Positions 15,821 through 60,805 of a stretch of DNA of 64,000 nt are shown in pieces; positions within the stretch are counted from its first letter, which is position 1; each line of letters opens with the position of its first letter. The notes beneath the pieces were generated by a model that saw only the letters and a list, made by a program, of their open reading frames with translations, was not told the DNA's origin and ran no database searches. Both the position numbers and the translations under genes were made by a program. The DNA comes from Macrostomum lignano (lineage: Eukaryota). The stretch covers positions 1 to 64,000 of the forward strand of contig NIVC01000396.1 in the NCBI GenBank assembly GCA_002269645.1, in the 5' to 3' direction.

Positions 15821-15980
15821 CAGCTAATGCTAGTACCCATTTTATAGCTAGATAAAACTGAAGCAATACTTAGTTAATGTCTTGCTTAAGAACAAAATTA
15901 ATTGATTTTAAGTAGATCAAGTAGGTCAAGTACTGAACCCTTGACCTTTCAGTTATAAGTCTGATACTCTAACGACTAGC
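15821..15980 (-). mobile_element. Decayed copy of the tRNA-derived SINE seen at 60520-60805
   Basis: The reverse complement aligns with 60530-60674 (AGCAAGACA-TTAACT...ATTGCTTCAGTTT...AGCT.TA.AATGGGT...AGCATTAGC) with many C>T/G>A changes. Confidence 0.7.
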
Positions 15981-25915: not shown

Positions 25916-25966
25916 TCACTGTCTCACACATCTCATAATAATTATCCACCTTCGCCGAATCGCCAG

Positions 25967-26024
25967 GGTACCCGATGAGTTCGTCCGCTCCGAAGGTGAA
26001 CGTGAACACGCAGCTGAAGAATGG
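25967..26024 (+). CDS. CASKIN: Caskin-like exon 2
   Basis: ccag|GG...AATGG|GTGAGG; encodes YPMSSSAPKVNVNTQLKNG, matching the Caskin KxNVN..D.DG segment; phase 1 to 2. Confidence 0.8.
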
Positions 26025-26244
26025 GTGAGGAATTCTGTTGGCGCTTTCACCGCCTCCAAGAATGCTATGCTTGCTATTTGTGTGTCTACTTTAAGTAGGC
26101 ATGCCAGCATCAGCGATGCAGTTTAAATCAAACTAAATCAGCAACGTACTGAATAAATTGTTTAAAGCATTCAATTTTTCCATAATTTTATTTCATAATT
26201 TCTTCAGCTGGTAGAGTCACTGCCACTCTGCCAGCTCATCATCA

Positions 26245-32294: not shown

Positions 32295-33390
32295 TAGGTC
32301 CTTAAGAATCGCCCCAATAGGTCCTTAAGAATCGCCCCAACAGGTCCTCAAGAATCGCCCCAACAGGTCCTCAATAATCGCCCCAACAGGTCCTGAAGAA
32401 TCGCCCCAACAGGTCCTGAAGAATCGCCTCGACAGGTCCTGAAGAATCGCCCCAACAGGTCCTGAAGAATCGCCCCAACAGGTCTTTAAGAATCGCCCCA
32501 TAAGGTCCTCAAGAATCGCCTTAAAAGATCTTGAAGAATCGCCCCAAGAAAATCCTGAAAATCGCCCCAACAAAAGCCCGAGAATCGTCCCAACTAAAGC
32601 CCGAGAATCGCCCCAACAAAAGCCCGAGAATCGTCCCAACAAAAGCCCGAGAATCGCCCCAACAAAAGCCCGAGAATCGCCCCAAGAAAATCCTGAAAAT
32701 CGCCCCAACAAAAGCCCGAGAATCGCCCCAACAAAAGCCCGAGAATCGCCCCAACAAAAGCCCGAGAATCGCCCCAACAAAAGCCCGAGAATCGCCCCAA
32801 CAAAAGCCCGAGAATCGTCCCAACAAAAGCCCGAGAATCGTCCCAACAAAAGCCCGAGAATCGCCCCAACAAAAGCACGAGAATCGCCCGAAGAAAATCC
32901 TGAAAATCGCCCCAACAAAAGCCCGAGAATCGTCCCAACAAAAGCCCGAGAATCGCCCCAACAAAAGCCCGAGAATCGCCCGAAGAAAATCCTGAAAATC
33001 GCCCCAACAAAAGCCCGAGAATCGTCCCAACAAAAGCCCGAGAATCGCCCGAAGAAAATCCTGAAAATCGCCCCAACAAAAGCCCGAGAATCGCCCCAAC
33101 AAAAGCCCGAGAATCGCCCGAAGAAAATCCTGAAAATCGCCCCAACAAAAGCCCGAGAATCGCCCCAACAAAAGCCCGAGAATCGTCCCAACAAAAGCCC
33201 GAGAATCGCCCGAAGAAAATCCTGAAAATCGCCCCAACAAAAGCCCGAGAATCGCCCCAACAAAAGCCCGAGAATCGTCCCAACAAAAGCCCGAGAATCG
33301 CCCCAACAAAAGCCCGAGAATCGTCCCAACAAAAGCCCGAGAATCGCCCCAACAAAAGCCCGAGAATCGCCCCAGCAAAAGCCTAAGAAG
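32295..33390. repeat. Caskin intron 3: 23-bp minisatellite (AACAAAAGCCCGAGAATCGCCCC)n and variants
   Basis: 23-bp periodicity with an older variant (AACAGGTCCTGAAGAATCGCCCC) at the 5' end. Confidence 0.95.
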
Positions 33391-33887
33391 CGCCCTATGG
33401 CCAGTTACCCTGCAAGAGGCGCATGCGTACTTCAGGAAAGAATTTTAGCAGATTTCCATTCCATATTAATTGCTAAATTATTGATACCCTTCCCGCACTT
33501 TAAATCTGATTTTACAGCTGCCGGGATGCGGGCAAAAGTTTTACAGGTGTAGGCATTATTTATTAATTTCGCAGCTTCGGTTCCGGCTTCAGTTAGGTAC
33601 GGATGGAATGAATTTAATGTGAAGAGTAAATAAGATCTGGGTTGCTATGCAATCAGTAGTGATTGAAGTGGAAAATTCCCATTTCAATTCCATTAGCGTC
33701 TGGGCTTTCATTTTGGCCGGCTAACTTTTCTCAGATTTAAATCTAGCTCTGGGACTTCTCCCCCAGGGTCGGGTTTGTACTTTTCAGACTTAATTAGGCA
33801 TATCAGATTAGTGTGGAAGATGATATATAACTAGGTATGTTCGAGTATTTTTTATAGCAATGGGGTATGTATACTACAGTATGTTAT

Positions 33888-34421
<534 letters not shown>

Positions 34422-34443
34422 AATGTCCCCTCTGCTTTTCCAG

Positions 34444-34589
34444 GTCTCCGCCCGCTGCACGTGGCCAGCTTCCAGGGTCACTTTGAGGCTGTGCACCTGC
34501 TGCTGAAGTGGCACAGCTGCGTGAATTCGGTCGCTCTGGGCGCCCTGACTCCGCTGCACCTGGCTTGCCAGGCCGGCCACTACGACGTG
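34444..34589 (+). CDS. CASKIN: Caskin-like exon 4 (ankyrin repeats)
   Basis: ttccag|GT; encodes GLRPLHVASFQGHFEAVHLLLKWHSCVNSVALGALTPLHLACQAGHYDV; donor GTTAGT. Confidence 0.9.
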
Positions 34590-34689
34590 GTTAGTGTGCT
34601 CACTTCCTCGCTTAAAATGTCTCTTTATATCATCCAGCTGTTATGTTAGTGTCAGTGTTATCCGCACCTCCCATCCCGGAACTGTGCAG

Positions 34690-34785
34690 GTGAAGCTGCT
34701 CCTGTGCAACAATGCCAACCCCATGCTGCGCGCCGATGACGGCCGATCCGCCTTTGACGTGGCCTGCGAGTTCGGCCGCTACACA
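34690..34785 (+). CDS. CASKIN: Caskin-like exon 5 (ankyrin repeat)
   Basis: gtgcag|GTG; encodes VKLLLCNNANPMLRADDGRSAFDVACEFGRYT (Caskin-type DLACEFGR motif); donor GTAAGT. Confidence 0.9.
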
Positions 34786-34834
34786 GTAAGTGGGGCCGTT
34801 TTTTTGAGCAATTTGCTAGTGCGTTTGGGTCAGA

Positions 34835-36112
34835 TGAGTCAGAGCTGTGTCAGTGGATTAGTGTATTTGTGGGTCAGGTGGGTCAGGTCTGTGTGCAGTA
34901 GATCAGTGTGTTTGTGGGTCAGGTCTGTGTGTCAGTGGATCAGTGTGTTTGTGGGTCAGGTCTGTGTGTCAGTGGATCAGTATGTTTGTGGGTCAAGTGG
35001 GTCAGGTCTGTGTGCAGTGGATCAGTGTGTTTGTGGGTCAGGTCTGTGTGTCAGTGGATCAGTGTGTTTGTGGGTCAAGTGGGTCAGGTCTGTGTGTCAG
35101 TGGATCAGTGTGTTTGTGGGTCAGGTCTGTGTGTCAGTGGATCAGTGTGTTTGTGGGTCAGGTCTGTGTCAGTGGATCAGTGTGTTTGTGGGTCAGGTCT
35201 GTGTCAGTGGATCAGTGTGTTTGTGGGTCAGGTCTGTGTGTCAGTGGATCAGTGTGTTTGTGGGTCAGGTCTGTGTGTCAGTGGATCAGTGTGTTTGTGG
35301 GTCAAGTGGGTCAGGTCTGTGTGCAGTGGATCAGTGTGTTTGTGGGTCAGGTCTGTGTGTCAGTGGTTCAGTGTGTTTGTGGGTCAGGTCTGTGTCAGTG
35401 GATCAGTGTGTTTGTGGGTCAGGTCTGTGTCAGTGGATCAGTGTGTTTGTGGGTCAGGTCTGTGTCAGTGGATCAGTGTGTTTGTGGGTCAGGTGGGTCA
35501 GGTCTGTGTGTCAGTGGTTCAGTGTGTTTGTGGGTCAGGTCTGTGTCAGTGGATCAGTGTGTTTGTGGGTCAGGTCTGTGTCAGTGGATCAGTGTGTTTG
35601 TGGGTCAAGTGGGTCAGGTCTGTGTGTCAGTGGATCAGTGTGTTTGTGAGTCAGGTCTGTGTGTCAGTGGATCAGTGTGTTTGTGGGTCAGGTGGGTCAG
35701 GTCTGTGTGTCAGTGGATCAGTGTGTTTGTGGGTCAGGTCTGTGTCAGTGGATCAGGTGGATTAGTGTGTATCCACACACACTAGTCAGTGGATCAGTGT
35801 GTTTGTGGGTCAGGTGGGTCAGGTCTGTGTGCAGTGGATCAGTGTGTTTGTGGGTCAGGTGGGTCAGGTCTGTGTGCAGTGGATCAGTGTGTTAGTGGGT
35901 CAAGTGGGTCAGGTCTGTGTGCAGTGGATCAGTGTGTTTGTGGGTCATGTCTGTGTGTCAGTGGATTAGTGTGTTTGTGGGTCAGGTCTGTGTGTCAGTG
36001 GATCAGTGTGTTTGTGGGTCAGGTCTGTGTGTCGGTGGATCAGTGTGTTTGTGGGTCAGGTCTGTGTGCAGTGGATCAGTGTACTCGTATTTGCGGGTCA
36101 GGTGGGTCAGGT
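34835..36112. repeat. Caskin intron 5: composite 35-46-bp minisatellite (GTCAGTGGATCAGTGTGTTTGTGGGTCAGGTCTGTGT)n
   Basis: Tandem units of variable length. Confidence 0.93.
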
Positions 36113-36209
36113 CAGGATAAAAATTGGTCCGAATCTCCAAGCAACATTTCTTGGATTGCATGTGCAGAAGTCAATACAAACATTGGTTCCCTAACACTGC
36201 AATCGCCAG

Positions 36210-36382
36210 ATTGTGCAGCTCCTCATGTCGCTCAAATCTGTTACCGGGCTGCTATTCGAGGACGCCGAGTATTTTCCCCAGCACAGTCCGCACCGCTCTG
36301 CCGCCTCCGAGCAGCAGGGCTACCGGCGGCCGCCTTCCTGCCTTCATCTGGCCGCCAAAAATGGCCACACCGATGTGCTCAG
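36210..36382 (+). CDS. CASKIN: Caskin-like exon 6
   Basis: gccag|ATT; encodes IVQLLMSLKS...PSCLHLAAKNGHTDVLR (Caskin-type LHLAAKNGH); donor AG|GTGAGT. Confidence 0.9.
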
Positions 36383-36464
36383 GTGAGTCCGGAGTCCTTG
36401 TGTGAAGGACTGTCTTGTACTTTTATTTTAGTAATTCACGGCTGCTAATATTTTCATTTTAAAG

Positions 36465-37630: not shown

Positions 37631-37789
37631 GTGAGTGGCGTGGCTTGATCTTAATGACTCTTTCTCTTGGGCTCGCTTGTTTGCCCAAGACTAACAGTTA
37701 GAGGGAGAAAGCTTAACCTGAGCCACTAGTTGTGCCTAATATTAGACATCTCTGATGACAAGCAAAAAGTGTGGCGTCTCCGCCTTGCC

Positions 37790-38740
37790 AGATCCCCAGC
37801 CTCCCAGATCCTCAGTTGCTGGGCCAGCCTCCCAGATCCTCAGTTGCTGGGCCAGCCTTCCGGATCCCCAGTTGCTGGGCCAGCCTCCCAGATCCTCAGC
37901 TGCTGGGCCAGCCTCCCAGATCCTCAGCTGCTGGGCCAGCCTCCCAGATCCTCAGCTGCTGGGCCAGCCTCCCAGATCCTCAGCTGCAGGGCCAGCTTCC
38001 CAGATCCTCAGTCTCCCAGATCCTCAGCTGCAGGGCCAGCTTCCCAGATCCTCAGTCTCCCAGATCCTCAGTCTCCCAGATCCTCAGTCTCCCAGATCCT
38101 CAGTCTCCCAGATCCTCAGTCTCCCAGATCCTCAGTCTCCCAGATCCTCAGTCTCCCAGATCCTCAGTCTCCCAGATCCTCAGTCTCCCAGATCCTCAGT
38201 CTCCCAGATCCTCAGTCTCCCAGATCCTCAGTCTCCCAGATCCTCAGTCTCCCAGATCCTCAGTCTCCCAGATCCTCAGTCTCCCAGATCCTCAGTCTCC
38301 CAGATCCTCAGTCTCCCAGATCCTCAGTCTCCCAGATCCTCAGTCTCCCAGATCCTCAGTCTGGGATCCTCAGTCTCCCAGATCCTCAGTCTCCCAGATC
38401 CTCAGTCTCCCAGATCCTCAGTCTCCCAGATCCTCAGTCTCCCAGATCCTCAGTCTCCCAGATCCTCAGTCTCCCAGATCCTCAGTCTCCCAGATCCTCA
38501 GTCTCCCAGATCCTCAGTCTCCCAGATCCTCAGTCTCCCAGATCCTCAGTCTCCCAGATCCTCAGTCTCCCAGATCCTCAGTCTCCCAGATCCCCAGTTG
38601 CTGGGCCAGCCTCCCAGATCCCCAGTTGCTGGGCCAGCCTTCCGGATCCCCAGTTGCTGGGCCAGCCTTCCGGATCCCCAGTTGCTGGGCCAGCCTTCCG
38701 GATCCCCAGTTGCTGGGCCAGCCTCCCGGATCCCCAGGCT
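37790..38740. repeat. Caskin intron 8: the 28-bp family flanking a derived 16-bp array (CAGATCCTCAGTCTCC)n
   Basis: Same monomer as 26245-27830 at both edges, with a 16-bp deletion derivative in the middle. Confidence 0.95.
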
Positions 38741-39244
38741 TCAGTAGCACAACTCAGCACAAAATGCCTGCCATGCAAACCACAAAGCTTGCTGATCAAC
38801 TCTGGCCAGTGTTCAGAATCCATAAAAAATCCAACCCTGACAACGCAAGCTCGGTCAAATCCTATTGCAAACTGTTGTTGCTGGGCTGCGGGCGTTGCCG
38901 GCACCTCGGGGATAATCTCCCACTCTGCTCTCAGTTGTCCCGGTTGCAGAGAATTTCTGACCTCATCTGCATAGCGAGAGACGAGAGATTCTCCGGGTGC
39001 AAGCAGCGCGATTTTAATTGCGGGTTAATTTTCACAAGCGCCGCACCGCCCCAACTCGGGTCATCCGAGGCCACGCAGATCAGACTGCGGACTATTTTAA
39101 TATTTATTCATCTTAAAAACTCGTTTTATCAATCAAATTTATGCTACTGGTGCACTCAGTAGTGTAAGTAGTTTTGATTGAAATATTAACAGTATTCCTG
39201 TGAAGACTTGCTTTTATAAGAATAAACGTCATTGCCAACTCAAT

Positions 39245-40028: not shown

Positions 40029-40453
40029 AGCGCATCTCCGCCGTCGCCGCCGTGGCCACCCGCGATTTCTGCAACCTGGCCGACCCGCGTAGCATCGCAT
40101 TCCGCGCCGGCGAGCATCTCACCGTGCTGGAGCGGACCAACGGCGACACCTGGAAGGGCTACGTGACCAGGGAGGGCCTCTCGAGGGCTGGCTACTTTCC
40201 CTGCTCCGCTGTGCGCTTGTTGGAGCAGCAGCAGCAGAAGCAACAGCATCAGCAGCGTCAGGATCCGCCAACCTGCCTGTCTGGCAGTCTAATGCACCAG
40301 TCCCAGCCTCATCAGATGCCGCCAGTCTCGCAGTCGACTCCGGCTAGCAACGCGGCCGTATCGCCAACCTCGGGTAGCAACAATCGGAACAGCGCGGCCA
40401 GCCTGGACAGCGGCCGGAGCAGCTCGCACACGGCGACCAGTTCCGATACGAGG
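40029..40453 (+). CDS. CASKIN: Caskin-like exon 9 (SH3 domain plus Q/S-rich linker)
   Basis: gtcgcag|AG; encodes AVATRDFCNLADPRSIAFRAGEHLTVLERTNGDTWKGYV...GYFPCSAV (SH3); donor AGG|GTGAGA. Confidence 0.9.
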
Positions 40454-40467
40454 GTGAGAGAACGCTC

Positions 40468-41125
40468 GCAGTTTCTTAGAATTCGGTTCATTAGTTATTT
40501 GTCAGGCTAGCAGTTTCCTAATTAGAATTCGGTTCATTAGTTATTTGTCAGGCTAGCAGTTTCCTAATTAGAATTCGGTTCATTAGTTATTTGTCAGGCT
40601 AGCAGTTTCCTAATTAGAATTCGGTTCATTAGTTATTTGTCAGGCTAGCAGTTTCCTAATTAGAATTCGGTTCATTAGTTATTTGTCAGGCTAGCAGTTT
40701 CCTAATTAGAATTCGGTTCATTAGTTATTTGTCAGGCTAGCAGTTTCCTAATTAGAATTCGGTTCATTAGTTATTTGTCAGGCTAGCAGTTTCCTAATTA
40801 GAATTCGGTTCATTAGTTATTTGTCAGGCTAGCAGTTTCCTAATTAGAATTCGGTTCATTAGTTATTTGTCAGGCTAGCAGTTTCTTAGAATTCGGTTCA
40901 TTAGTTATTTGTCAGGCTAGCAGTTTCTTAGAATTCGGTTCATTAGTTATTTGTCAGGCTAGCAATTTCCTAATTAGAATTCGGTTCATTAGTTATTTGT
41001 CAGGCTGGCAGTTTCTTAGAATTCGGTTCATTAGTTATTAGTCAGGCTGGCAGTTTCTTAGAATTCAGTTCATTAGTTATTTGTCAGGCTAGCAGTTTCT
41101 TAGAATTCAGTTCATTAGTTATTAG
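40468..41125. repeat. Caskin intron 9: 46-bp minisatellite (GCAGTTTCCTAATTAGAATTCGGTTCATTAGTTATTTGTCAGGCTA)n
   Basis: About 14 units, starting about 14 nt after the donor. Confidence 0.95.
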
Positions 41126-41194
41126 TTCCCTTAAAGACGCAATCAAGCTGGCATCGATTCCAACATTAATCTCCTGTGCTTCTCTCAAACGCAG

Positions 41195-41951
41195 AGCGCC
41201 GTCGCCTTGACGGCCTCCGGTCCCTCCGGCCCCGCCGGCCCCGCCGGCGCGAACTCTTCAACGGGCTCCGCTGCCGCAGCGGCCGCCGCCTCCGCCGGGA
41301 CCATGTGTTCGCGAGTCTTGAACAGCGCGACTAATACGCCACGTAGCGCCGCGGCACCGGCGGCCGCGAACGGATCTGTGGACTCCGGGCTCGGTCCGCA
41401 CCGGCAGAGCATGGTGAGCACCTGCTCATCCGGCAGTCTGGGCAGCCTGCCAGACGACAACAGCTCGGCTGCGTCAGTGAGCTCTGGCGAGCTGCAGTAC
41501 CAGCAGCAGCAGCAGCACGGCTGGCTGCGGGAGGACTGGCGCAGTCTGACCAGCAGCCAGCAGCTGCACAGGTTCTTAGACTGGTGCCAGCTCGCCTGTT
41601 ACCATCGCTCCATTGAGGAGGCCGGCTACGACCTCGCCACGCTGGTCCGCTGCACTCCTGAGGATCTCAATGCCGCCGGGGTCACCAACCCGCGGCACAG
41701 GAAGCGCCTGCGGTCCGATCTGGCGCGGCTTGGCCAGGCCATGCAGGCCGGCCAGGCGCCCGGCGGCCTGCCCGACCCTATTGAGGACGCCGCCTGCCTG
41801 ACCGCCGATGCCGCCCTGACGGAACTCTGCTGCCGCCTGGGCCTGCCGGATACCGCCTCTGCCTGCCTGCGGCGTGCCGGCTTCCAGCTGGTTAGGGACC
41901 TCGGCCAGATGGCCTGGGAGGATCTGGAGGAGATCGGCATCAACAGGCTGG
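41195..41951 (+). CDS. CASKIN: Caskin-like exon 10 (SAM1 and most of SAM2)
   Basis: acgcag|AGC. SAM1 is LHRFLDWCQL...GYDLATLVRCTPEDLNAAGVTNPRHRKRL; SAM2 includes MAWEDLEEIGINRLG. Donor G|GTAAGG. Confidence 0.92.
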
Positions 41952-41974
41952 GTAAGGAGCGACATTTGAGCTGC

Positions 41975-43115
41975 CTTTCTAGTGAGAGCTGGGATCATCC
42001 ATCTCTAGTGAGAGCTGGGATCACCTATTTCTAGTGAGACCTGGGATCATCCATCTCTAGTGAGAGCTGGGATCATCCATTTCTTGTGAGAGCTGGGATC
42101 ATCCATTTCTAGTGAGAGCTGGGATCATCCATTTCTAGTGAGAGCTGGGATCATCCATTTCTAGTGAGAGCTGGGATCATCCATTTCTAGTGAGAGCTGG
42201 GATCATCCATTTCTAGTGAGAGCTGGGATCACCTATTTCCAGTGAGAGCTGGGATCATCCATCTCTAGTGAGAGGTGGGATCATCCATCTCTAGTGAGAG
42301 CTGGGATCATCCATTTCTAGTGAGAGCTGGGATCACCTATTTCTAGTGAGAGCTGGGATCACCTATTTCTAGTGAGAGCTGGGATCACCTATTTCTAGTG
42401 AGAGCTGGGATCACCTATTTCTAGTGAGAGCTGGGATCACCTATTTCTAGTGAGAGCTGGGATCATCCATCTCTAGTGAGAGCTGGGATCATCCATCTCT
42501 AGTGAGAGCTGGGATCATCCATTTCTAGTGAGAGCTGGGATTATCCATTTCTAGTGAGAGCTGTGTTCACCTATTTCTAGTGAGAGCTGGGATCATCCAT
42601 CTCTAGTGAGAGCTGGGATCACCTATTTCTAGTGAGAGCTGGGATCACCTATTTCTAGTGAGAGCTGGGATCATCCATCTCTAGTGAGAGCTGGGATCAT
42701 CCATCTCTAGTGAGAGCTGGGATCACCTATTTCTAGTGAGAGCTGGGATTATCCATTTCTAGTGAGAGCTGTGTTCACCTATTTCTAGTGAGAGCTGGGA
42801 TCATCCATCTCTAGTGAGAGCTGGGATCACCTATTTCTAGTGAGAGCTGGGATCACCTATTTCTAGTGAGAGCTGGGATCACCTATTTCTAGTGAGAGCT
42901 GGGATCACCTATTTCTAGTGAGAGCTGGGATCATCCATCTCTAGTGAGAGCTGGGATCACCTATTTCTAGTGAGAGCTGGGATCACCTATTTCTAGTGAG
43001 AGCTGGGATCACCTATTTCTAGTGAGAGCTGGGATCACCTATTTCTAGTGAGAGCTGGGATCACCTATTTCTAGTGAGAGCTGGGATCACCTATTTCTAG
43101 TGAGAACTGGGATCA
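41975..43115. repeat. Caskin intron 10: 26-bp minisatellite (TTCTAGTGAGAGCTGGGATCATCCAT)n
   Basis: About 44 units. Confidence 0.95.
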
Positions 43116-43829: not shown

Positions 43830-44485
43830 TCTGGGATATTGGATCTAGCATTGGGATCTTGGATCTGGCATTGGGATCTTGGATCTGGCATTGGGATCTT
43901 GGATCTGGCATTGGGATCTGGGATCTAACATTTGAGATCTGGGATCTGGAATTGGGATTTTTGATCTGGAATTGGGATCTGGGATCTGGCATTGGGATCT
44001 GGGATCTGGCATTGGGATCTGGGATCTAGCATTGAGATCTAGGATCTGGCATTGGGATCTTGGATCTGGAATTGGGATCTGGGATCTAGCATTGGGATCT
44101 TGGATCTGGCATTGGGATCTGGGATCTAGCATTGAGATCTTCTGGGATCTGGCATTGGGATCTGGGATCTGGCATTGGGATCTTGGATCTGGCATTGAGA
44201 TCTGGGATCTAGCATTGGGATCTGGGATATTGGATCTAGCATTGGGATCTGGGATCTGGCATTGGGATCTGGAATCTGAGATCTGGCATTGGGATCTGGG
44301 ATCTAGCATTGGGATCTGGGATCTGGCATTGGGATCTGGAATCTGAGATCTGGGATCTAGCATTGGGATCTAGGATCTAGCATTGGAATCTGGAATCTGG
44401 CATTGGTATCTGGGATCTAGCATTGGGATCTGGGATCTAGCATTGGAATCTGGGATCTGGCATTGGAATCTGGGATCAAGCATCG
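43830..44485. repeat. Caskin intron 11: about 20-bp minisatellite (GGGATCTGGGATCTGGCATT)n
   Basis: Tandem GGGATCT/GGCATT modules. Confidence 0.93.
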
Positions 44486-48520: not shown

Positions 48521-48658
48521 TTAGGGTTGGGCGAGGCTTGGGCGATGCAGAGTAACAGAGCCAGTGTAGACACGAATTAAAATGTGTCACCACTATTGTC
48601 TACTTTTAGTAGGCGAGCGTGTTTTTTATTCTAATTTTTTTGTTTAAAAAATCTGCAG

Positions 48659-49341
48659 GCGACGCCCGCCCGGAGCTGCCAGCCGGCGAGGACGCCCTGG
48701 TGCTGTTCGAATCGAAATTCTGCCCGTTCTGCCAGCGGGTGGTCCTGGCGCTGAACCAGCGCGGCATTCCCTACCAGTCGGTGTACATCAACTTGTCCGC
48801 CAAGCCCGAATGGTTCGCCGAAATCAACCCAGGCGGCAAGGTGCCCGTGCTGATGATGGGGTCTCAGAGGCTGGTCGACTCCCTCATGATCTGCCGCTAC
48901 GTTGACGAGCTGCCGTCTGGCGGCGTCTCGGAGGCCCAGCTGTGCAGCAATGCGGATGCCGAGCGGCTGGCCCTGGCCTGGCTGGGCGAGTTCTTCCCGC
49001 CCATGCACGACCTCATGACTCGGCCGGATGAGGCTCCGGAGAAGCTGGAGCAGGTTACGGCCGCCATGCGCCAGTTTGGCGAGCGCCTCGGCCCCAAGCC
49101 TTTCATTGGCGGCGCTCAGACTGTCGGCCTGGCCGACCTGATCGCCTATCCGGCCGTTGCCATAGCAACCGGTCTGGCCGGCGTGCTCGACTGTCCGGAG
49201 CCGGCTGCCAGCGATACGGCTCTGGCCGGCTGGCTGGCCGAGATGCAGGCAGTGAAGGCGACGTCGGCGGCCACCAAGCCGGTCGAATGGGGCGCCTTTC
49301 TCAAGAGCCTGCGGGCCGGCAACCCGGACTACTCAGTGTGA
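48659..49341 (+). CDS. GSTO: Omega-class (GSTO/DHAR-like) glutathione S-transferase, exon 2
   Basis: ctgcag|GC. Encodes FCPFCQRVVLAL, YINLSAKPEWFAEINPGGKVPVL, LVDSLMICRYVDE and a C-terminal GLADLIAYP segment (N-capping-box-like); stop at 49339-49341. Confidence 0.92.
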
Positions 49342-49484: not shown

Positions 49485-49905
49485 GTGTCTAGTCCTGTTG
49501 GTACATCGGTAGTGCAGTATCCATGGTAACTAGCTCTGTTGCTATATGGGTAGTGCAGTAGCCATGGTAACTAGCCCTGTTGCTAGTTGGGTAGTGCAGT
49601 ATCCATGGTAACTAGCTCTGTTGCTATATGGGTAGTGCAGTATCCATGGTAACTAGCTCTGTTGCTATATGGGTAGTGCAGTATCCATGGTAACTAGCCC
49701 TGTTGCTATATGGGTAGTGCAGTATCCATGGTAACTAGCCCTGTTGCTATATGGGTAGTGCAGTAGCCATGGTAACTAGCCCTGTTGCTAGTTGGGTAGG
49801 GCAGTATCCATGGTAACTAGTCCTGTTGCTATGTAGTGAATGTCGTATCCATGGTAACTAATCCGGTTGCTTTTTGGACTATTTCGTTTCCATGGTAACA
49901 AATCC
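49485..49905. repeat. 41-bp minisatellite (GTAGTGCAGTATCCATGGTAACTAGCCCTGTTGCTATATGG)n
   Basis: About 9-10 units downstream of the GST stop. Confidence 0.9.
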
Positions 49906-50916
49906 TGTTGCGATACAGGGAGGCCTGTATTCATAGTGACTAGTTGCTATGGGGGGAATATCCAGAGTAAACTGGTTCTCTAGCTACATTATAACAGTTT
50001 TATAAATTTATAGGAACGGGTCGTATCCATGGTAACAACTATTTTCAATTTACCATTTTCTTAGTCCTAAAAACAGAGATGCTTTGCAGATGGATGTTTT
50101 TGTCGGCAATCAAATTTATGCGGTAACTACTGACTGATAGATCAGTTTGTTGTTTGCTTTCCGTGTGTCTAAAAACATTAGATATTAATATAAATTGTTG
50201 TTTTCATTCACAATCGTATTATATTCCAGATTGCGCTGCAAATGAGGATTTCCTAGCATCCGGTTTTGCAGCTGCAAGCTTTTTTGTGGAATTTTTTCTT
50301 ATTTTAATTGCAAATTTTCAGCTACTCACTACTAATTAGTAGTTTGCGCGCTTTCTAACAAAGCTTCGAAATTGTATTTCTAACTTTTTTGTTGTTTATT
50401 AGTTAATTTAACTGTTATTCTATTTTCAGTAGGAAGCAGTGCAAATGAACATAAAATTATATTATTTATATTAAAAACGCTTCCGTCTGGCTTTAAGCAG
50501 TTATAGTTGAGTAGATAAGTAGTGTGAGCCGCAGACCCCATTGATCATCTTATAAGACAATTAATTATATTGCCACCCGTTTACTGCGGTCCAGTTGTTT
50601 GTTGTCTGCTAATTGTAGTTCAAGCTGGCATTATGTCGAATAACAATATACTCGTATATTATATTTAATAATAGACTGGCTCTACTAAACAGTCAGAGGA
50701 TAATCATTGAATTGATTACGTAATCGTTTTATTAATGACGAACTTTCATTTCTACGAATAAGCTTTGATTGATAGATTTGACACGGATTGACACGGAGAG
50801 ATTGCGCTTAGTTCGTATCGTATGAAGTTATTTTATGTGTGAATCGACACTTCGAACGCATGGAGTGCATGTTAACTCTGCCAAATCATTGGCTATCGAG
50901 GCTTGCTTCAGAGATC

Positions 50917-51614
50917 CTAGCGTAGCGTCACGGCCAGCTTGTCAGCAAGGCGGAAACTGGTCTCAAGCGGCACGTCCGGCTGCGTGCTGTACACCAGCCG
51001 CGGCGGCGAGGTCATGTTGCCGCCGGCCCAGTCGACAGCGCAGCCGTCGGTTACGTCGAGAGCTACCATGAGTCCAAGATCACCCGGGCAGCCGCCGTAA
51101 AACTAGTGAATGAACCAGCGGCGCTGTCCACTAGCATCGCCAGCAATGCTGAAGAATTGGAAGGTCCTGCTGGCGAGGTCGGTTAACGGGCCAGCTGGCC
51201 TTCAGCCGGTCCCGAGAGAACCAGTTGGTCCTGTTCAGCTCGTGAGGCGACGCCGAGAGGTCCAATGTGACCTTCAGGACGACGGAGTCGGCGACGGAGA
51301 GCTGGACGACGGCCTCCTTGAAGGTGAGCTTCGGCGCTACGGTGGGCAGCTGGTCGATGGCGCTGGCGCGGAACAGGTCGGGCAGGAGGCTGGCGGAGCC
51401 GGGCGCGCCCCGGACGGCGGAGTCGTTGCTGTGGCTCGGCGAGTCGACCAGGTCGAACGACTTGACGCCGACGCCCGCTCGGATGCTCAGCGCGAGGAAG
51501 CCGCGCTCGGCGACGTCGCAGGACACGAGGCAGCGGCGAACTGCGACTCCGTGAAGCAGCCGGGCCCAGCAGCAGCGTCAGGCACGTCAGGAGCGGCACC
51601 CTCACATGCGCCAT
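50917..51614 (-). pseudogene. Inverted pseudogene copy of the secreted Cys-rich protein family
   Basis: Homologous to 59473-60396. It has a frameshifting deletion in the signal-peptide region, an internal deletion of about 200 bp, a +1 insertion (GTTAACCGAC versus GTCACCGAC, about 51184) and an in-frame TAG (WFIH*FYGGC). Confidence 0.88.
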
Positions 51615-51651: not shown

Positions 51652-54600
51652 CAGTAGAACTACCAAGAGGGGGGGGGAAATTTCCCCCCCCTGACAATTT
51701 TTTTTGCTGCGCCGGAACGGAGCAACGCAGGCACACGAAATTCAAGAACACGGGCTAACTTCTTGTTGCGCACCTTCTCAAACAAGAATCAAGTCGCCAA
51801 CCCTCCGGACCGTCGAGATATTCGACGATTCTGCCAGAAGGTCGGATTTTTCCCATAAGCGCTAGTGTATTCAGTACACCCCTGTGCGCCAATTAGCACT
51901 GCGCCTCAGTGCAGCCTTGCCAAGTCTCCAAATTTCATCAGCACGTCGACCAAATGTGTCTGCATCAGCTCTGACTTCGTTGGTTACTGGCCTTCACCGA
52001 GACGGAGCTTCTAGACCTTCAACAGGTGGCACCAGGTGACTATGAACACCTTGATGCGAATTTATCGAGTTTCACCGATCAAGCCTCGACAGTAGGCAAG
52101 CCTCAACTGCCGGACACCCTCAGCTAGTCTCCTGAGCATTCCGTCATCATCCCGACACCGTCGGCTACTTCAAGAGGTTGCATCAGGTGACTATGGACGT
52201 CCTTTTGCAACTATGTCAGGTCTTTCTTATCAAGCTTCAATAATGGGCAAACCTCAACCGACGGACATTGTCAGCTAGTCTCTCAAGCATTCCGTCATCA
52301 TCCCGACGCCGTCGGCTCCTTCAACAGATGACACCAAGTGACTATGGACACCCTGATGCGAATTTCTCTAGTTTCGCCGATCAAGCCTCGACAGTAGGCA
52401 AGCCTCAACTGCTGGACACCTTCAGCTAGTCTCCTAAGCATTCCGTCATCATCCCGATGCCGTCGGCTCCTTCAACAGATGACACCAAGTGACTATGGAC
52501 ACCCTGATGCGAATTTCTCTAGTTTCGCCGATCAAGCCTCGACAGTAGGCAAGCCTCAACTGCTGGACACCTTCAGCTAGTCTCCTAAGCATTCCGTCAT
52601 CATCCCGACGCCGTCGGCTCCTTCAACAGATGACACCAAGTGACTATGGACACCCTGATGCGAATTTCTCTAGTTTCGCCGATCAAGCCTCGACAGTAGG
52701 CAAGCCTCAACTGCTGGACACCTTCAGCTAGTCTCCTAAGCATTCCGTCATCATCCCGACGCCGTCGGCTCCTTCAACAGATGACACCAAGTGACTATGG
52801 ACACCCTGATGCGAATTTCTCTAGTTTCGCCGATCAAGCCTCGACAGTAGGCAAGCCTCAACTGCTGGACACCTTCAGCTAGTATCCTAAGCATTCCGTC
52901 ATCATCCCGACACCGTCGGCACCTTCAACAGGTGGCATCAGGTGACTATGGACGTCCTTTTGCAACTATGTCAGGTCTTTCTTATCAAGCTTCAATAATG
53001 AGCAAACCTCAACCGACGGACATTGTCAGCTAGTCTCTCGAGCATTCCGTCATCATCCCGACGCCGTCAGCTCCTTCAACAGATTACACCAGGGACTATG
53101 GACAGCCTGATAAGAATTTCTCTAGTTTCGCCGATCAAGCCTCGACAGTAGGCAAGCCTCAACTGCTGGACACCTTCAGCTAGTCTCCTAAGCATTCCGT
53201 CATCATCCCGACACCGTCGGCACCTTCAACAGGTGGCATCAGGTGACTATGGACGTCCTTTTGCAACTATGTCAGGTCTTTCTTATCAAGCTTCAATAAT
53301 GAGCAAACCTCAACCGACGGACATTGTCAGCTAGTCTCTCGAGCATTCCGTCATCATCCCGACGCCGTCAGCTCCTTCAACAGATTACACCAGGGACTAT
53401 GGACAGCCTGATAAGAATTTCTCTAGTTTTGCCGATCAAGCCTCGATAGTGGGCAAAAATCAACTGCTGGACATCCTCAGCTAGTCAGTCAAGCATTTAG
53501 CCATCACCCGACGCCGTCGGCCCCTTCAACAGGTGGCACCAGGGGAGTAAGGACACCTGAGCGTGATTTTTCATCATGCTCTTAACATTTCTGAAGCTCT
53601 CAAAATTTTTAAAGCACGGACATTGCTATAGTTAAGCTTGAACTCATGTTGCTGTATATTTATATTATTATTACACATACTTTTATGCATACGAGCTACA
53701 TACATATTTTATTCGAAAAGCTGTTTAGTTTATTCAACTATAATATTGAACCGAATTTTTATGCAGAAAGGGTTATGCTTATAAGAAGCCAGTAAATTAA
53801 ATCCGTTTTTTCATTTTATAATGATTCAGAAATGTTAAGAGCATGATGAAAAATCACACTCAGGTGTCCTTACTTCCCTGGTGCCACCTGTTGAAGGTGC
53901 CGACGGCGTCGGGGTGATGGCTGAATGCTTGACTGACTAGCTGAGGATGTCCAGCAGTTGATTTTTGCCCACTATCGAGGCTTGATCGGCAAAACTAGAG
54001 AAATTCTTATCAGGCTGTCCATAGTCCCTGGTGTAATCTGTTGAAGGAGCTGACGGCGTCGGGATGATGACGGAATGCTCGAGAGACTAGCTGACAATGT
54101 CCGTCGGTTGAGGTTTGCTCATTATTGAAGCTTGATAAGAAAGACCTGACATAGTTGCAAAAGGACGTCCATAGTCACCTGATGCCACCTGTTGAAGGTG
54201 CCGATGGTGTCGGGATGATGACGGAATGCTTAGGAGACTAGCTGAAGGTGTCCAGCAGTTGAGGCTTGCCTACTGTCGAGGCTTGATCGGCGAAACTAGA
54301 GAAATTCTTATCAGGCTGTCCATAGTCCCTGGTGTAATCTGTTGAAGGAGCTGACGGCGTCGGGATGATGACGGAATGCTCGAGAGACTAGCTGACAATG
54401 TCCGTCGGTTGAGGTTTGCTCATTATTGAAGCTTGATAAGAAAGACCTGACATAGTTGCAAAAGGACGTCCATAGTCACCTGATGCCACCTGTTGAAGGT
54501 GCCGACGGTGTCGGGATGATGACGGAATGCTTAGGATACTAGCTGAAGGTGTCCAGCAGTTGAGGCTTGCCTACTGTCGAGGCTTGATCGGCGAAACTAG

Positions 54601-55496
54601 AGAAATTCGCATCAGGGTGTCCATAGTCACTTGGTGTCATCTGTTGAAGGAGCCGACGGCGTCGGGATGATGACGGAATGCTTAGGAGACTAGCTGAAGG
54701 TGTCCAGCAGTTGAGGCTTGCCTACTGTCGAGGCTTGATCGGCGAAACTAGAGAAATTCTTATCAGGCTGTCCATAGTCCCTGGTGTAATCTGTTGAAGG
54801 AGCTGACGGCGTCGGGATGATGACGGAATGCTCGAGAGACTAGCTGACAATGTCCGTCGGTTGAGGTTTGCCCATTATTGAAGCTTGATAAGAAAGACCT
54901 GACATAGTTGCAAAAGGACGTCCATAGTCACCTGATGCCACCTGTTGAAGGAGCCGACGGTGTCGGGATGATGACGGAATGCTCAGGAGACTAGCTGAGG
55001 GTGTCCGGCAGTTGAGGCTTGCCTACTGTCGAGGCTTGATCGGTGAAACTCGAGAAATTCGCATCAAGGTGTTCATAGTCACCTGGTGCCACCTGTTGAA
55101 GGTCTAGAAGCTCCGTCTCGGTGAAGGCCAGTAACCAACGAAGTCAGAGCTGATGCAGACACATTTGGTCGACGTGCTGATGAAATTTGGAGACTTGGCA
55201 AGGCTGCACTGAGGCGCAGTGCTAATTGGCGCACAGGGGTGTACTGAATACACTAGCGCTTATGGGAAAAATCCGACCTTCTGGCAGAATCGTCGAATAT
55301 CTCGACGGTCCGGAGGGTTGGCGACTTGATTCTTGTTTGAGAAGGTGCGCAACAAGAAGTTAGCCCGTGTTCTTGAATTTCGTGTGCCTGCGTTGCTCCG
55401 TTCCGGCGCAGCAAAAAAAATTGTCAGGGGGGGGGGAAATTTTTCCCCCCCTCTTGGTAGTTCGACGGGCGGAAAAATGGCTTGGTATTCCTACTG
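51652..55496. mobile_element. Foldback (FB-like) element: about 3.8-kb palindrome with long arms containing 151-bp tandem repeats
   Basis: About 51657-53594 is the reverse complement of about 53825-55463, around an AT-rich spacer of about 230 bp. The arms hold about 10 and about 8 copies of a 151-bp unit. Outer CAGTAG/CTACTG are each flanked by TTAA (51648-51651, 55497-55500) if a roughly 27-nt insertion on the right is allowed. No ORF. Confidence 0.88.
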
Positions 55497-56311: not shown

Positions 56312-57217
56312 ATGATTGCGCCACTCTTTACGTGCTTGGTGCTGCTGGTGGGCGCCGCTGCTGAGCCCGACTGCTTCACGGAGTCGCAGTTCGCATCGAT
56401 CTGCGAGCCGCCGGTTCGAGTCGCCAGCGGCAGCCAAGGCGTCCGCGGCTGCTTCCGGCCGGACCTGCCGCAGCCGACGGGAGCCGCCGCGGGCGAGTCG
56501 GTCACGTGGGACGCCGCCTCCGGTGTCTGCGAGCGTCGCCCGACCGACTGCGGCGACTTCGCCGCCTGCCCCGTCTCGGCCTCGGCAGGGGGCCGCTGCC
56601 TCGTGTCCTGCGACATCGCCGAGCGCGGCTTCCTCGCGCTGAGCATCCGAGCGGGCGTCGGCGTCAAGTCGTTCGACCTGGTCGACTCGCCGAGCCGCAG
56701 CAACGGCTCCGCCGTCCAGGGCACACCCGGGTCCGCCAGCCTCCTGCCCGACCTGTTCCGCGCCAGCGCCATCGACCAGCTGCCCACCGTAGCGCCGAAG
56801 CTCACCTTCAAGGAGGCCGTCGTCCAGCTCTCTGTCGCCGACTCCGTCGTCGTGAAGGTCACCTTCGACCTCTCGGCGTCGCCTCACGAGCTAAACAGGA
56901 CCAGCTGGTTCTCTCGGGACCGGCTGAAGGCCAGCTGGCCCGTCACCGACCTCGCCAGAAAGAGCTTTAACTACTTCAGCATTGGGGGTCATGTCAAGCG
57001 TAAACTTGAGCGCCGTTGGTTCATCAATTATGCTTACGGCGGCTGCAAGAGAGACCGCGGCCTCATGGTGGCTCTCGACATAACCGACGGCTGCGCTGCC
57101 TCCTGGGGCAACGGCAGCGTGACCTCGCCCCCGCGGCTGGTGTACAGCACGCAGTCGGATGTGGCATTTAAGAGCAGTTTCCAGCTTGCTGACAGGCTGG
57201 CCGTGACCCTACGCTGA
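56312..57217 (+). CDS. Secreted Cys-rich protein, copy A (301 aa, intronless); C-terminal domain resembles the USOMP5-like (uncharacterized skeletal organic matrix protein 5) family
   Basis: Signal peptide MIAPLFTCLVLLVGAAA, then an 8-Cys module. The C-terminal pattern WFSRDRL..SWP.TDL....NYFSI.G.....RRWFINY.YGGC..D.G......D...C..W......P...Y is one I recall from invertebrate USOMP5-like proteins. The family call needs a profile search. Confidence 0.85.
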   Translation: MIAPLFTCLVLLVGAAAEPDCFTESQFASICEPPVRVASGSQGVRGCFRPDLPQPTGAAAGESVTWDAASGVCERRPTDCGDFAACPVSASAGGRCLVSCDIAERGFLALSIRAGVGVKSFDLVDSPSRSNGSAVQGTPGSASLLPDLFRASAIDQLPTVAPKLTFKEAVVQLSVADSVVVKVTFDLSASPHELNRTSWFSRDRLKASWPVTDLARKSFNYFSIGGHVKRKLERRWFINYAYGGCKRDRGLMVALDITDGCAASWGNGSVTSPPRLVYSTQSDVAFKSSFQLADRLAVTLR

Positions 57218-57499
57218 GCTCTGCCTGAAGCCTGTGTGAGCTGGCAGTACAGTGTGCAAACGTTTTGCGCGATACGAAACTTGCATTGACGGTCAGTCAG
57301 TAATGCTTTTTCAATCCTAAATTCTGCGCCCGGCTGCAATTTCACCAGTTTTCTAAATACGATTTTTCAGTAAAGCGGTGTTTCATCTTCGAGGAATAAA
57401 TTTCAGATGTGGTAACTGTGGTCGGTTGTTCGAGCTCGGCCTCAGTACTGTAAATTTCATGCTAATGGGTTTTATTTAGACTTTGGGACACGATGAGTG

Positions 57500-57860
57500 A
57501 AGCCCGCAAATCCATAGGCGTTGGGACGCGATGGGTGAAGCCTGGAGGAGATCCAGAGGCGTTGGGACGTGCAGAGGGAAGCCTGTAGGAGATCCAGAGG
57601 CGTTGGGACATGCAGACTGAATCCCGCAAATCCAGAGGCGTTGGGACATGCAGACTGAAGCCCGCAGGAGATCCAGAAACGTTGGGACGTGCAGAGGGAA
57701 GCCTGGAGGAGATCCAGAAACGTTGGGACGTGCAGAGGGAAGCCTGGAGGAGATCCAGAAACGTTGGGACGTGCAGAGGGAAGCCTGGAGGAGATCCAGA
57801 AACGTTGGGACGTGCAGAGGGAAGCCTGGAGGAGATCCAGAGGCGTTGGGACGTGCAATG
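57500..57860. repeat. 41-bp minisatellite (GCAGAGGGAAGCCTGGAGGAGATCCAGAAACGTTGGGACGT)n
   Basis: About 8 units between copies A and B. Confidence 0.92.
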
Positions 57861-58711
57861 AATCTTCTATGGTTCAGTGCAGATAGTTAGTAGTACATCT
57901 ATAATTGGCGCTCTTCTACTTCAGGTTCGGTACCTGATACTGCTATGGTAACCAGTCTTTGCAAATTTTAATTGCAATAAAATTGGCAGGCCTCTGTTCG
58001 CCGGTTTCGAGCCCTTGTCATAAATCGCAGTCAAGCAAACAGACAGGTCCATTCCGCTTGACCCCAGAGCACGCACACGATACTCTCTCACTCAGATTGT
58101 ACAACGGTCCCGAGTTTCTCAACCTCAGGCCAATCAATAAATCCGTGAAAACTTAAACTTAACTATCAATGTTTTGGTATCCTAAATGTCAGTCACGTAT
58201 GCAAAGATTTTAAAGAATTGTAAAGGCCAAGAGACAATGTCCAGTGCGAATTAAATGGCTGGCAAATATGGCCAGCTTTGTCTGAATTTGCATTATCGGT
58301 AATAGGGGGGATTATCAGTTGCGTAGCGGTAAATTGACTTCTCACCTTCTGTCCTGCCGCATTGCAAATGAAGTTCGAATATGTGCTAGACTTCTTTTAC
58401 TCGTGTTTTATTAGAGGCAGGATGGTGTGTGCACACTGGCGCACATTAAGCGACATTGTCGCACAACCTGCGAGAGGCATTGCTGCACATTCCGCCGACT
58501 CACCTGAGCAGGCACACTCCAAGGGTCCAAGCGCGCGGATACGTACTCAGTCATACGCACAGGCACACACACTCACACAGGAGTGTACAGCGGCCCTAAC
58601 TTTCTTTATCGTTAGACATGTACACTTCACTTTGCCTTGGGAGTTGACCTTCAAGTGCGTTAATTGCACGAGCAGAGTCAAGCCGAGATTCAAATTTAGC
58701 CTCAAATTAAT

Positions 58712-58780
58712 GTGACTGCACTTGGAATCGAACCTGGGCCGTTGGCACATCAGAACACCGCACTGGACTACTAGGCTGCC
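58712..58780 (-). other. Degenerate tRNA-like Pol III A/B-box remnant (possible SINE head)
   Basis: TAGTCCAGTGCGG (A-box-like) and GGTTCGATTCC (B box) on the minus strand; spacing is short and no acceptor stem is visible. Confidence 0.35.
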
Positions 58781-59472
58781 ACAACGACAACAACGGATTT
58801 TGCACCAATTGTCTTCTTTTACAACGGGTAAAAGTGTTCGGTCTAGAAAACTCCACATGGAATGCATAAATGTACATTTATTTTGAAAACGAATTCTGCC
58901 TCTTAGTCGCAGAGTCCAGCGCGCCTCTCCAATACTTTGGCTGGCAATTTCTTGCAGTCGAAACAGTTTAAAGTCCTCCACTTGTTAAGAAAAGTTTCTG
59001 CCTGAAACAGTTGTCTCTTCCTTCAGCCAGTCTTCCTGAGTAGCCTCATCATTAATTAATTAATCCGCAGCCGCCAGTCCCCAGGAGGGAAGAATAATGC
59101 GTGCTTAGTAGCTAACATTAGTGCTTCAAATTATTTTTAACGTAGCCTGAGTAAGCAGGTTTTCTATGCCTAATCGGACGCAAACTTTTCCACTCTTGCA
59201 ATTTGAAGAGTGCAGCAACTCAGCTTGCAAGCCCCTCACTTCGTTGTCAAAACAGCCGTCTTGCGGATCTCCGGAGTCCTGCAGATGGCCGTGCCCAATA
59301 ATTGATGAGTCTGCAGGGCGAGACCAAAATCCCCCAGCCAATCCGCAAAAAGTTTTGCTGGATCCGGCAGCAAGCGAAATAAATGCTCTAAAACCAGCAA
59401 GCGTTAGAGCCGCTCAAAACTGGAAGAGAAAAATCTACTGGCCAAACCACTGACATAGACTTGCACTGAACA

Positions 59473-60396
59473 ATGAAGTCGTCCGGTGTGACACTCCTGA
59501 CGTGCCTGGCGCTGCTGCTGGCCGCCGGGGCCGCCGCCGGACAGCCCGGCTGCTTCACGGAGTCGCAGTTCGCATCGATCTGCGAGCCGCCGGTTCGAGT
59601 CGCCAGCGGCAGCCAAGGCGTCCGCGGCTGCTTCCGGCCGGACCTGCCGCAGCCGACGGGAGCCGCCGCGGGCGAGTCGGTCACGTGGGACGCCGCCGCC
59701 GGTGTCTGCGAGCGTCGCCCGACCGACTGCGGCGACTTCGCCGCCTGCCCCGTCTCGGCCTCGGCAGGGGGCCGCTGCCTCGTGTCCTGCGACGTCGCCG
59801 ATCGCGGCTTCCTCGCGCTGAGCATCCGAGCGGGCGTCGGCGTCAAGTCGTTCGATCTGGTCGACTCGCCGAGCCGCAGCAACGGCTCCGCCGTCCAGGG
59901 CACACCCGGGTCCGCCAGCCTCCTGCCCGACCTGTTCCGCGCCAGCGCCATCGACCAGCTGCCCACCGTAGCGCCGAAGCTCACCTTCAAGGAGGCCGTC
60001 GTCCAGCTCTCTGTCGCCGACTCCGTCGTCGTGAAGGTCACCTTCGACCTCTCAGCGTCGCCTCACGAGCTAAACAGGACCAACTGGTTCTCTCGGGACC
60101 GGCTGAAGGCCAGCTGGCCCGTCACCGACCTTGCCAGCAGGACCTTCAACTACTTCAGCATCGAAGGTCATTCTGATGGCATACTCGAGCGTCGCTGGTT
60201 CATCAATTATGCTTACGGCGGCTGCCCGGGCGATCTCGGCCTCATGGTAGCTCTCGACGTAACCGACGGCTGCGCTGTCGACTGGGCCGGCGGCAACATG
60301 ACCTCGCCGCCGCGGCTGTTGTACACCACCTCACATAACGTCACTTGGAAGCTGAGCGTACAAAGTGCGGATAAACTCGCTGTCATTCTGCGCTGA
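59473..60396 (+). CDS. Secreted Cys-rich protein, copy B (307 aa, intronless paralogue of copy A)
   Basis: ATG at 59473, signal peptide MKSSGVTLLTCLALLLAAGAAAG; about 580 bp are nearly identical to copy A and the C-terminus is divergent. Confidence 0.88.
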   Translation: MKSSGVTLLTCLALLLAAGAAAGQPGCFTESQFASICEPPVRVASGSQGVRGCFRPDLPQPTGAAAGESVTWDAAAGVCERRPTDCGDFAACPVSASAGGRCLVSCDVADRGFLALSIRAGVGVKSFDLVDSPSRSNGSAVQGTPGSASLLPDLFRASAIDQLPTVAPKLTFKEAVVQLSVADSVVVKVTFDLSASPHELNRTNWFSRDRLKASWPVTDLASRTFNYFSIEGHSDGILERRWFINYAYGGCPGDLGLMVALDVTDGCAVDWAGGNMTSPPRLLYTTSHNVTWKLSVQSADKLAVILR

Positions 60397-60519: not shown

Positions 60520-60805
60520 GGGGTTTTAGCCTTGTGGTTAGAGCGTCGGATTCACGACTTGAAGGTCGGGGGTTCGATTCCCGATCCCACTGGAACAATT
60601 TTTGTCATTGAGCAAGACACTTAACTCTGCATTGCTTCAGTTTAGCCAGCTGTAGAATGGGTGCCAGCATTAGCGACCCTCCAGTCCTTGGACTGAACAG
60701 CCGTACGCAGCCTTCAGATGCGCCGCGCAATAGCTGTGGCTGAGCTGTCGGTTGCACATCTGCCAATTGGGGCAGGTGTAATCAATTATATTATTGTTAT
60801 TTAAT
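60520..60805 (+). mobile_element. tRNA-derived SINE
   Basis: A box TAGCCTTGTGG (60527), B box GGTTCGATTCCC (60571), T-arm CGGGG/TCCCG, body TTGAGCAAGACACTTAAC and an (ATT)-rich tail. A second, decayed copy lies at 15821-15980. Confidence 0.75.

Follow-up and report, generated by a model that had tools for sequence, protein, structure and literature searches.

Two neighbouring genes of the flatworm Macrostomum lignano, located in a 64,000-nucleotide stretch of contig NIVC01000396.1 (hereafter the window), raise the question of how a pair of paralogues can be practically identical over most of the coding sequence and deeply divergent over the rest, and whether this contrast marks a diversified recognition system, as proposed in a first-pass annotation, or a common event in the history of a gene family. 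The genes, designated A and B, are as follows.

56312-57217, plus strand: gene A, intronless coding sequence of 301 amino acids (aa), defined by its open reading frame (ORF) and translation.
59473-60396, plus strand: gene B, intronless coding sequence of 307 aa with the architecture of gene A, defined in the same way.

Both ORFs are intact, single-exon and codirected, with a spacing of 3.2 kb, and the two-copy structure is described here as read from one assembled contig; look-ups of public assemblies returned no record of the exact products of A and B. In gene A a predicted signal peptide (aa 1-17) is followed by a Cys-rich region (aa 18 to about 93) and by a family domain resembling fibrinogen domains (FBG-like, aa 94-301). 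The signal peptides of both genes were predicted by eye from the hydrophobic N-terminal segment, and the products look secreted. For the Cys-rich region (aa 18-93) no homologue was found outside Macrostomum, the match being an M. lignano copy only. The overall account that we consider likely describes A and B as tandem paralogues of an FBG-linked family, in which the core was overwritten by recent gene conversion while the tail is old and kept under purifying selection.

The mature parts of the two genes can be aligned without gaps (A 56363 corresponds to B 59542), and the 79 differences found over 852 nt subdivide the alignment into segments of very different age.

56371-56952, plus strand: proposed conversion tract in A, 582 nt with 6 differences to its partner, synonymous divergence (dS) about 0.013, GC content at third codon positions (GC3) 0.92.
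59550-60131, plus strand: proposed conversion tract in B, the partner of 56371-56952.
56953-57214, plus strand: unconverted 3′ third of A, aa 214-301, facing 60132-60393 of B, with 71 nt and 30 aa differences.

Differing sites number 8 of 588 in the core against 71 of 264 in the tail (Fisher p=1e-30), and the contrast holds on synonymous differences alone (p=2e-16), with dS of 0.013 in the core versus 0.75 in the tail. The longest run of identity between A and B extends over 197 nt; in 20,000 permutations this run averaged 50 nt and never exceeded 190 (p<5e-5). The six core differences fall at A positions 56519, 56615, 56623, 56677, 56875, and 56904, and four of them are nonsynonymous (S/A, I/V, E/D, and S/N), so that the near-identical 582-bp core with 6 nt and 4 aa changes reported in the first-pass annotation is reproduced exactly. 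The tail patches named there are likewise present: 30 positions differ over the last 88 residues, including RKS/SRT, VKRK/SDGI, KRDR/PGDL, and AASWGNGSV/AVDWAGGNM, and the swap of charge is real, the net charge of the tail being +8 in A and -1 in B. On the opposite side of the core the signal-peptide regions are divergent and contain indels, again in agreement with the earlier description, and in the flanks, before the signal peptide and after the stop codon, A and B can no longer be aligned.

In this account, one recent interlocus conversion of about 582 bp overwrote codons from approximately 20 to 213, where the genes are now 99% identical; it did not reach the signal-peptide region, the final 88 codons or any of the flanking DNA, which retain a much older divergence. 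The tail is in its turn composed of pieces exchanged earlier between members of the family. The boundary of the tract might be held by selection for two functionally distinct tails, convertants losing the difference being removed; alternatively, sequence divergence of 20-45% may block the extension of heteroduplex. GC3 comes to 0.92 in the tract and to 0.72 in the tail, which fits GC-biased conversion, and other genes in the window have values of 0.77-0.83. Partial gene conversion between tandem duplicates is described for the human gamma-globin genes HBG1/HBG2 and for the red/green opsin genes. With these A and B share a sharply bounded tract of near-identity within otherwise diverged duplicates, boundaries unrelated to gene or domain limits, raised GC content and mosaicism of a third copy; the mechanism is no different, only the organism and the gene family are. 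The locus was put forward as a candidate for an undescribed system, yet it is better regarded as an ordinary paralogue pair with partial conversion, a common pattern in gene families; it provides a clean case of this process, useful for annotation though not new in mechanism.

Evidence for exchange between copies comes from a third member of the family located upstream of gene A.

50917-51614, minus strand: pseudogene C, third family copy, which has lost about 200 nt internally and a further 6 nt, gained 1 nt and acquired an in-frame TAG.

No other family copies beyond A, B, and C were found elsewhere in the 64-kb window, and a fourth one, contained inside the fused M. lignano protein model A0A1I8IVZ4, brings the number of compared copies to four. 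In the core, identity amounts to 98.6% for A-B, 96.0% for A-C, and 95.8% for B-C. In the first tail segment (opposite A 56944-57139) the corresponding values are 81.5, 76.7, and 87.3%, and in the second one (opposite A 57140-57217) they are 55.1, 83.3, and 52.6%, so that pseudogene C appears as a mosaic of a B-like segment followed by an A-like one; the first-pass annotation had already called the pseudogene mosaic. The fourth copy combines a B-like signal-peptide end and the motif ‘ASRTF’ with an A-like remainder. This segment-wise incongruence with pseudogene C implies repeated exchange between copies, and homogenization of the core by conversion, already assumed in the first-pass annotation, is supported by the difference in dS, by the abrupt boundaries on both sides and by the incongruence of three copies.

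Since dS of the tail reaches 0.75, with dN of 0.24 and the dN/dS ratio (omega) of 0.32, significantly below 1 (p=1e-4), the tail is old and under net purifying selection; it is not fast-evolving. The first-pass annotation regarded it as hypervariable and diversified and set an omega well below 1 combined with old divergence as the outcome speaking against diversification; the check was run, and this is the outcome obtained. The three parts of the tail behave differently: aa 214-237 show dS of 1.3, dN of 0.20, and omega of 0.15; for aa 238-277 dS is 0.125, dN is 0.18, and omega is 1.45, a non-significant value obtained from 14.5 nonsynonymous and 3.5 synonymous differences; and in aa 278-301 synonymous sites are essentially saturated, with dN of 0.40 and omega not computable. 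In the last 24 codons (57143-57214 versus 60322-60393) 16.9 of 17.2 synonymous sites differ, above the random saturation level of 0.75, and B uses AT-ending codons where A has GC-ending ones; this excess may be an artefact of Nei-Gojobori path counting or a real shift in codon usage. The middle part deserves separate consideration and includes the following elements.

57023-57142, plus strand: tail sub-segment with the WFINYAYGGC motif, the Cys245-Cys261 loop and adjacent loops.
57047-57057, plus strand: patch KRDR/PGDL, beside Cys245.
57099-57119, plus strand: patch AASWGNGSV/AVDWAGGNM, beside Cys261.

It is here that the idea of a recognition system, in which the scaffold is kept by conversion and ligand-facing C-terminal loops are diversified by positive selection by analogy with immune, allorecognition, or reproductive proteins, finds its arguments. 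Nonsynonymous changes within 57023-57142 are gathered in the two dense patches adjoining the cysteines, within otherwise near-identical DNA, and dN exceeds dS in aa 238-277; nevertheless, the local omega is neutral-like (p=1.0 against neutrality), and its heterogeneity relative to the flanking segments is marginal (p=0.057). Three residue states are met among four copies at positions 228-231 (VKRK/SDGI/VKGT) and 246-247 (KR/PG/SS), which favours diversification, as does the charge swap itself; however, the known copies number no more than four, including a pseudogene, and the B and C proteins are identical over aa 243-278, from which it follows that turnover is not rapid. By predicted secondary structure, half of the 30 variable tail residues (15) belong to loops, 10 to strands, and 5 to helices. 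The suggestion that variable sites are clustered in loops between invariant anchors stands for one part of the tail and fails for another: aa 214-270 contain 18 variable residues, 12 of which occupy predicted loops bordered by family-conserved positions, and in aa 271-301, 7 of 12 changes belong to predicted strands. It also agrees with this idea that the C-terminal subdomain of classical fibrinogen-related lectins is established to hold the ligand site. Taken with the significantly low omega of the whole tail and with dS values ranging from 0.75 to saturation, which make most of the differences old, these data leave selection-driven diversification of recognition loops an unlikely explanation. 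Should diversifying selection be acting on the loop patches near the conserved disulfide, this locus would serve as a tractable flatworm model of binding-protein diversification.

A related proposal takes the A/B subfamily as secreted FBG-like lectins exchanging cassettes, where short conversion tracts shuffle old and selectively maintained loop variants around Cys245-Cys261 onto a homogenized scaffold. The variants found around this disulfide are KRDR/PGDL/SSDR and AASWGNGSV/AVDWAGGNM. Multigene families of snail fibrinogen-related proteins (FREPs) are known to be reshaped by gene conversion, and cassette exchange, if true, would be a flatworm counterpart of snail FREP diversification, on a fold without a solved representative; we hold it as a speculative possibility with rather low chances.

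An opposite order of events could also be imagined, namely recent duplication of the coding core followed by replacement of the 5′ ends and tails through ectopic conversion from distant paralogues. The mosaic tails, with C and the A0A1I8IVZ4 copy combining A-type and B-type segments differently, and the expansion of the family in M. lignano are in line with it. However, at least three events would be needed instead of one internal conversion, no trace of duplicated untranslated or intergenic DNA is seen on either side, and the core of C is 96% identical to those of A and B, which shows that the core stays constant among copies rearranged in their other parts. Because the flanks are unrelated while the core is young, one internal conversion is preferred, and this scenario of duplication with replaced ends is accordingly quite improbable. 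The weakest explanation, near-identity of the core as an artefact of assembly or consensus polishing (reads of one paralogue correcting the other, or partial collapse), draws on the abundance of satellites and the 99% palindrome at the locus and on the highly repetitive, recently duplicated genome for which the source genus is generally known, but is very hard to believe given two complete ORFs with unique flanks in one contig, six genuine differences inside the tract, identity bounds lying within coding sequence away from repeat edges, and the presence of the same core at 92-96% identity in an independent M. lignano protein model and in pseudogene C.

Partial conversion thus being preferred, it remains to consider what kind of protein has been affected. 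The C-terminal portions of A and B contain the motifs NWFSRDRL, NYFSI.GH, RRWFINYAYGGC, and C..W, and the unconverted half bears NYFSI...RRWFIN..YGGC...C.W together with the Cys245-Cys261 loop. Relatives with a complete N-terminus carry the fibrinogen-type segment ‘SCKDI...GVYWI...FPVYCDM..GGGWT’ and exceed gathering scores for Pfam Fibrinogen_C PF00147 (22-32 bits) and COLFI PF01410 (up to 36.7 bits), these matches being confined to the N-terminal segment (profile positions approximately 2-108), and they match NCBIfam GGGWT_bact NF040941 at 45-72 bits. When compared with the PDB, the profile of relatives finds intelectins, angiopoietins, tenascins, collagen C-propeptides, and fibrinogens (best E=1.5e-8), over the N-terminal segment only, and PDB profile searches with alignments devoid of this segment returned nothing. 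In A and B the YCDxxxxGGGW segment is degenerate. Alignment of A by hhalign to the profile of 12 motif-bearing (coral-type) relatives covers aa 94-301 with a probability of 98.9% and E=1.8e-17, placing GRCLVSCDIAERGF of A opposite EAFPVYCDMAGGGW in a register identical to that of MAFFT, and CLVSCDIAERGFLALSIRAG of A is aligned to FPVYCDMAGGGWTMVFKAVSG by both programs. Because the hhalign alignment runs through this segment to the motif-bearing relatives, A and B belong, on profile evidence, to the FBG-like (fibrinogen/intelectin/collagen-C-propeptide) superfamily, as divergent representatives of a branch that has no name. The same alignment disagrees with the separate C-terminal domain supposed in the first-pass annotation: one domain of about 200 aa is present, the tail makes up its second half, and the conversion boundary cuts through it.

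The AlphaFold2 model built for aa 103-301 of A with 76 aligned sequences is confident and mostly beta, with a mean predicted local distance difference test score of 87.8 and a predicted template modelling (TM) score of 0.88. In Foldseek its first matches are L-ficolin, MFAP4, and fibrinogen, with E of 0.6-1 and a TM score of about 0.3, the full-length model behaving alike. The body of the domain thus has no solved close relative; no Pfam model covers it either. Several results weigh against the account favoured here: in aa 238-277 omega exceeds 1, contrary to what simple purifying selection would give; A and B match no Pfam family at E<=1 and no NCBIfam family; and the search of the PDB by Foldseek with the aa 103-301 model gave no match at E<=0.001.

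With regard to function, A and B may be extracellular binding proteins, their putative lectin-like activity being suggested by remote relatives. The unconverted half probably sets the two products apart functionally, making A basic and B acidic-to-neutral (isoelectric points of the mature proteins are 8.55 and 5.65, respectively) and endowing the tails with different N-glycosylation sequons, NGS at 267 in A versus NMT at 275 and NVT at 289 in B.

Comparison with named systems delineates this placement. Proteins with fibrinogen-related domains (FReD; ficolins, tachylectin-5, angiopoietins, tenascins, snail FREPs; PF00147, PS51406) are secreted, as A and B look to be; their pattern ‘C..I....G.Y.I...... 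F.VYCDM..GGGWT’ is borne by relatives of A and B, with PDB matches at E from 1e-7 to 1e-5; the domain has a similar size (approximately 200-220 aa), and its C-terminal part includes a short loop closed by a disulfide; and ficolins and fibrinogens top the Foldseek lists, although not significantly. In contrast to FReD proteins, the stretch after GGGWT is unrecognized by FReD models, the predicted fold of A matches at a TM score of about 0.3 only, and the family is marked by a signature of its own; past the N-terminal segment, alignment to a solved FReD gave no dependable correspondence of residues, and no Ca2+ or ligand site was identified. Intelectins, or X-type lectins, are secreted carbohydrate-binding proteins, and among PDB sequences they are matched best by the family profile (XEEL and ITLN1, E=1.5e-8 and 1.3e-7). 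As in intelectins, the resemblance of the family to fibrinogen domains is limited to a short FBG-like segment at the N-terminus, after which the sequences diverge; past this segment no sequence similarity to intelectins was detected, and they are absent from the Foldseek matches to aa 103-301. Coral relatives exceed the gathering threshold of COLFI (PF01410) over profile positions 17-108, and relatives match the bacterial ‘fibrinogen-like YCDxxxxGGGW domain’ (NF040941) at E of 2e-20 and 8e-12, some bacterial proteins also carrying the C-terminal domain of the family; A and B themselves match neither model, have no collagen triple helix upstream and, unlike the bacterial members, are devoid of PEP-CTERM or VPLPA-CTERM tags. 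The name USOMP5, to which the domain had been likened, occurs in none of the 159 family clusters or 10 coral clusters. In Acropora millepora USOMP5 (uncharacterised skeletal organic matrix protein 5) was described only as an incomplete ‘orphan’ sequence (PMC3748352).

The family itself is large. Exhaustive phmmer search yielded 194 representative proteins with E<1e-3, and the profile search with the domain-only alignment gave the 159 family clusters, covering gastropods, bivalves, amphioxus, sea stars, brittle stars, a crinoid, a hemichordate, nemerteans, scleractinian corals (Montipora, Pocillopora, Stylophora, Porites, and Oculina), and a few bacteria. Most of the top-scoring matches are M. 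lignano proteins, the closest to A and B being A0A1I8IVZ4 (86% by phmmer, 80-82% by tblastn). The widely conserved part of A is limited to aa from about 105 to 301, and the signature of the family reads NWFS...NYFSI.GH...RRFFIN..YGGC..D.GW...C.W...LYS...AD. Proteins of other animals join the domain to ZP, EGF, Sushi, TSP1, PAN, or SUEL-lectin modules, and predicted proteins of M. lignano contain as many as nine copies of it in tandem. The outcome of such searches depended on the procedure used: the word-indexed homologue search with B retrieved one Lymnaea protein only and missed A0A1I8IVZ4 despite its presence in the same collection, so the absence of matches there is weak evidence, and with the full-length alignment the word-indexed search gave one match, since low-complexity words filled the candidates, and the domain-only alignment worked. 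Definition and characterization of the family, which is probably lectin-like, would close an annotation gap affecting hundreds of entries of marine invertebrate genomes that now read ‘uncharacterized protein’, and this under-described domain deserves more attention than the contrast between A and B. Its distribution between animals and bacteria merits a phylogeny. Bacterial members (working labels P0245, P0246, P0260, and also P0127 and P0131) match at E from 1e-37 to 1e-41 and include a protein from a Sedimenticola metagenome-assembled genome and one from Rhodovulum sp. P5; PEP-CTERM/VPLPA-CTERM sorting tags occur at their ends, and P0127 combines a Cys-rich region of myxobacterial type with a strong GGGWT_bact match.

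The immediate surroundings of the copies are rich in repeats.

51684-55434, strand not assigned: palindrome (foldback) of about 3.7 kb, with arms at approximately 51684-53509 and 53912-55434, 99% complementary, and a spacer of about 400 nt.
57483-57857, strand not assigned: 41-bp minisatellite of about 8.6 copies, in the A-B intergenic region.
49508-49915, strand not assigned: 41-bp minisatellite of about 10 copies, unrelated to the previous array, just upstream of the pseudogene locus.
60531-60798, strand not assigned: tRNA-like short interspersed element (SINE), just downstream of B.

The foldback adjacent to the pseudogene, mentioned in the first-pass annotation, is thus present; its arms consist of a 151-bp satellite, and it separates pseudogene C from gene A, the two being oriented in opposite directions away from each other. 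Near-perfect identity of the arms suggests recent formation of the palindrome or arm-to-arm conversion, and the palindrome and minisatellites may promote exchanges among the copies. The SINE shows 82% identity over 274 nt to an intragenic element of another M. lignano contig, NIVC01002179 (11463-11725). Further tRNA-like SINE copies are seen at 15823-15897, and a tRNA-like stretch at approximately 58700-58790; since ARAGORN calls no tRNA genes in the window, these stretches are regarded as SINE-type repeats.

Other coding features of the window are located at a distance from the family copies.

7722-9044, minus strand: exon of a rhodopsin-family G protein-coupled receptor (GPCR; 7tm_1, E=1e-61).
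13763-14788, minus strand: remnant of a Tc1/mariner-like transposase (helix-turn-helix and DDE_3).
40052-42034, plus strand: exons with SH3 and SAM domains.
48619-49341, plus strand: GST-like ORF.

Based on the M. lignano matches, the shared SINE and the GPCR, GST, SH3, SAM, and transposase content, the window is ordinary flatworm chromosomal DNA. Bacterial or other foreign origin of the GC-rich intronless A and B was considered and rejected, the neighbouring host genes having GC3 of 0.77-0.83. Segments 25368-26126, 32325-33378, 33867-36448, 37730-39162, and 43845-44363 are long ORF-like mini- and microsatellite arrays open in several frames, which are probably non-coding and inflate ORF lists.

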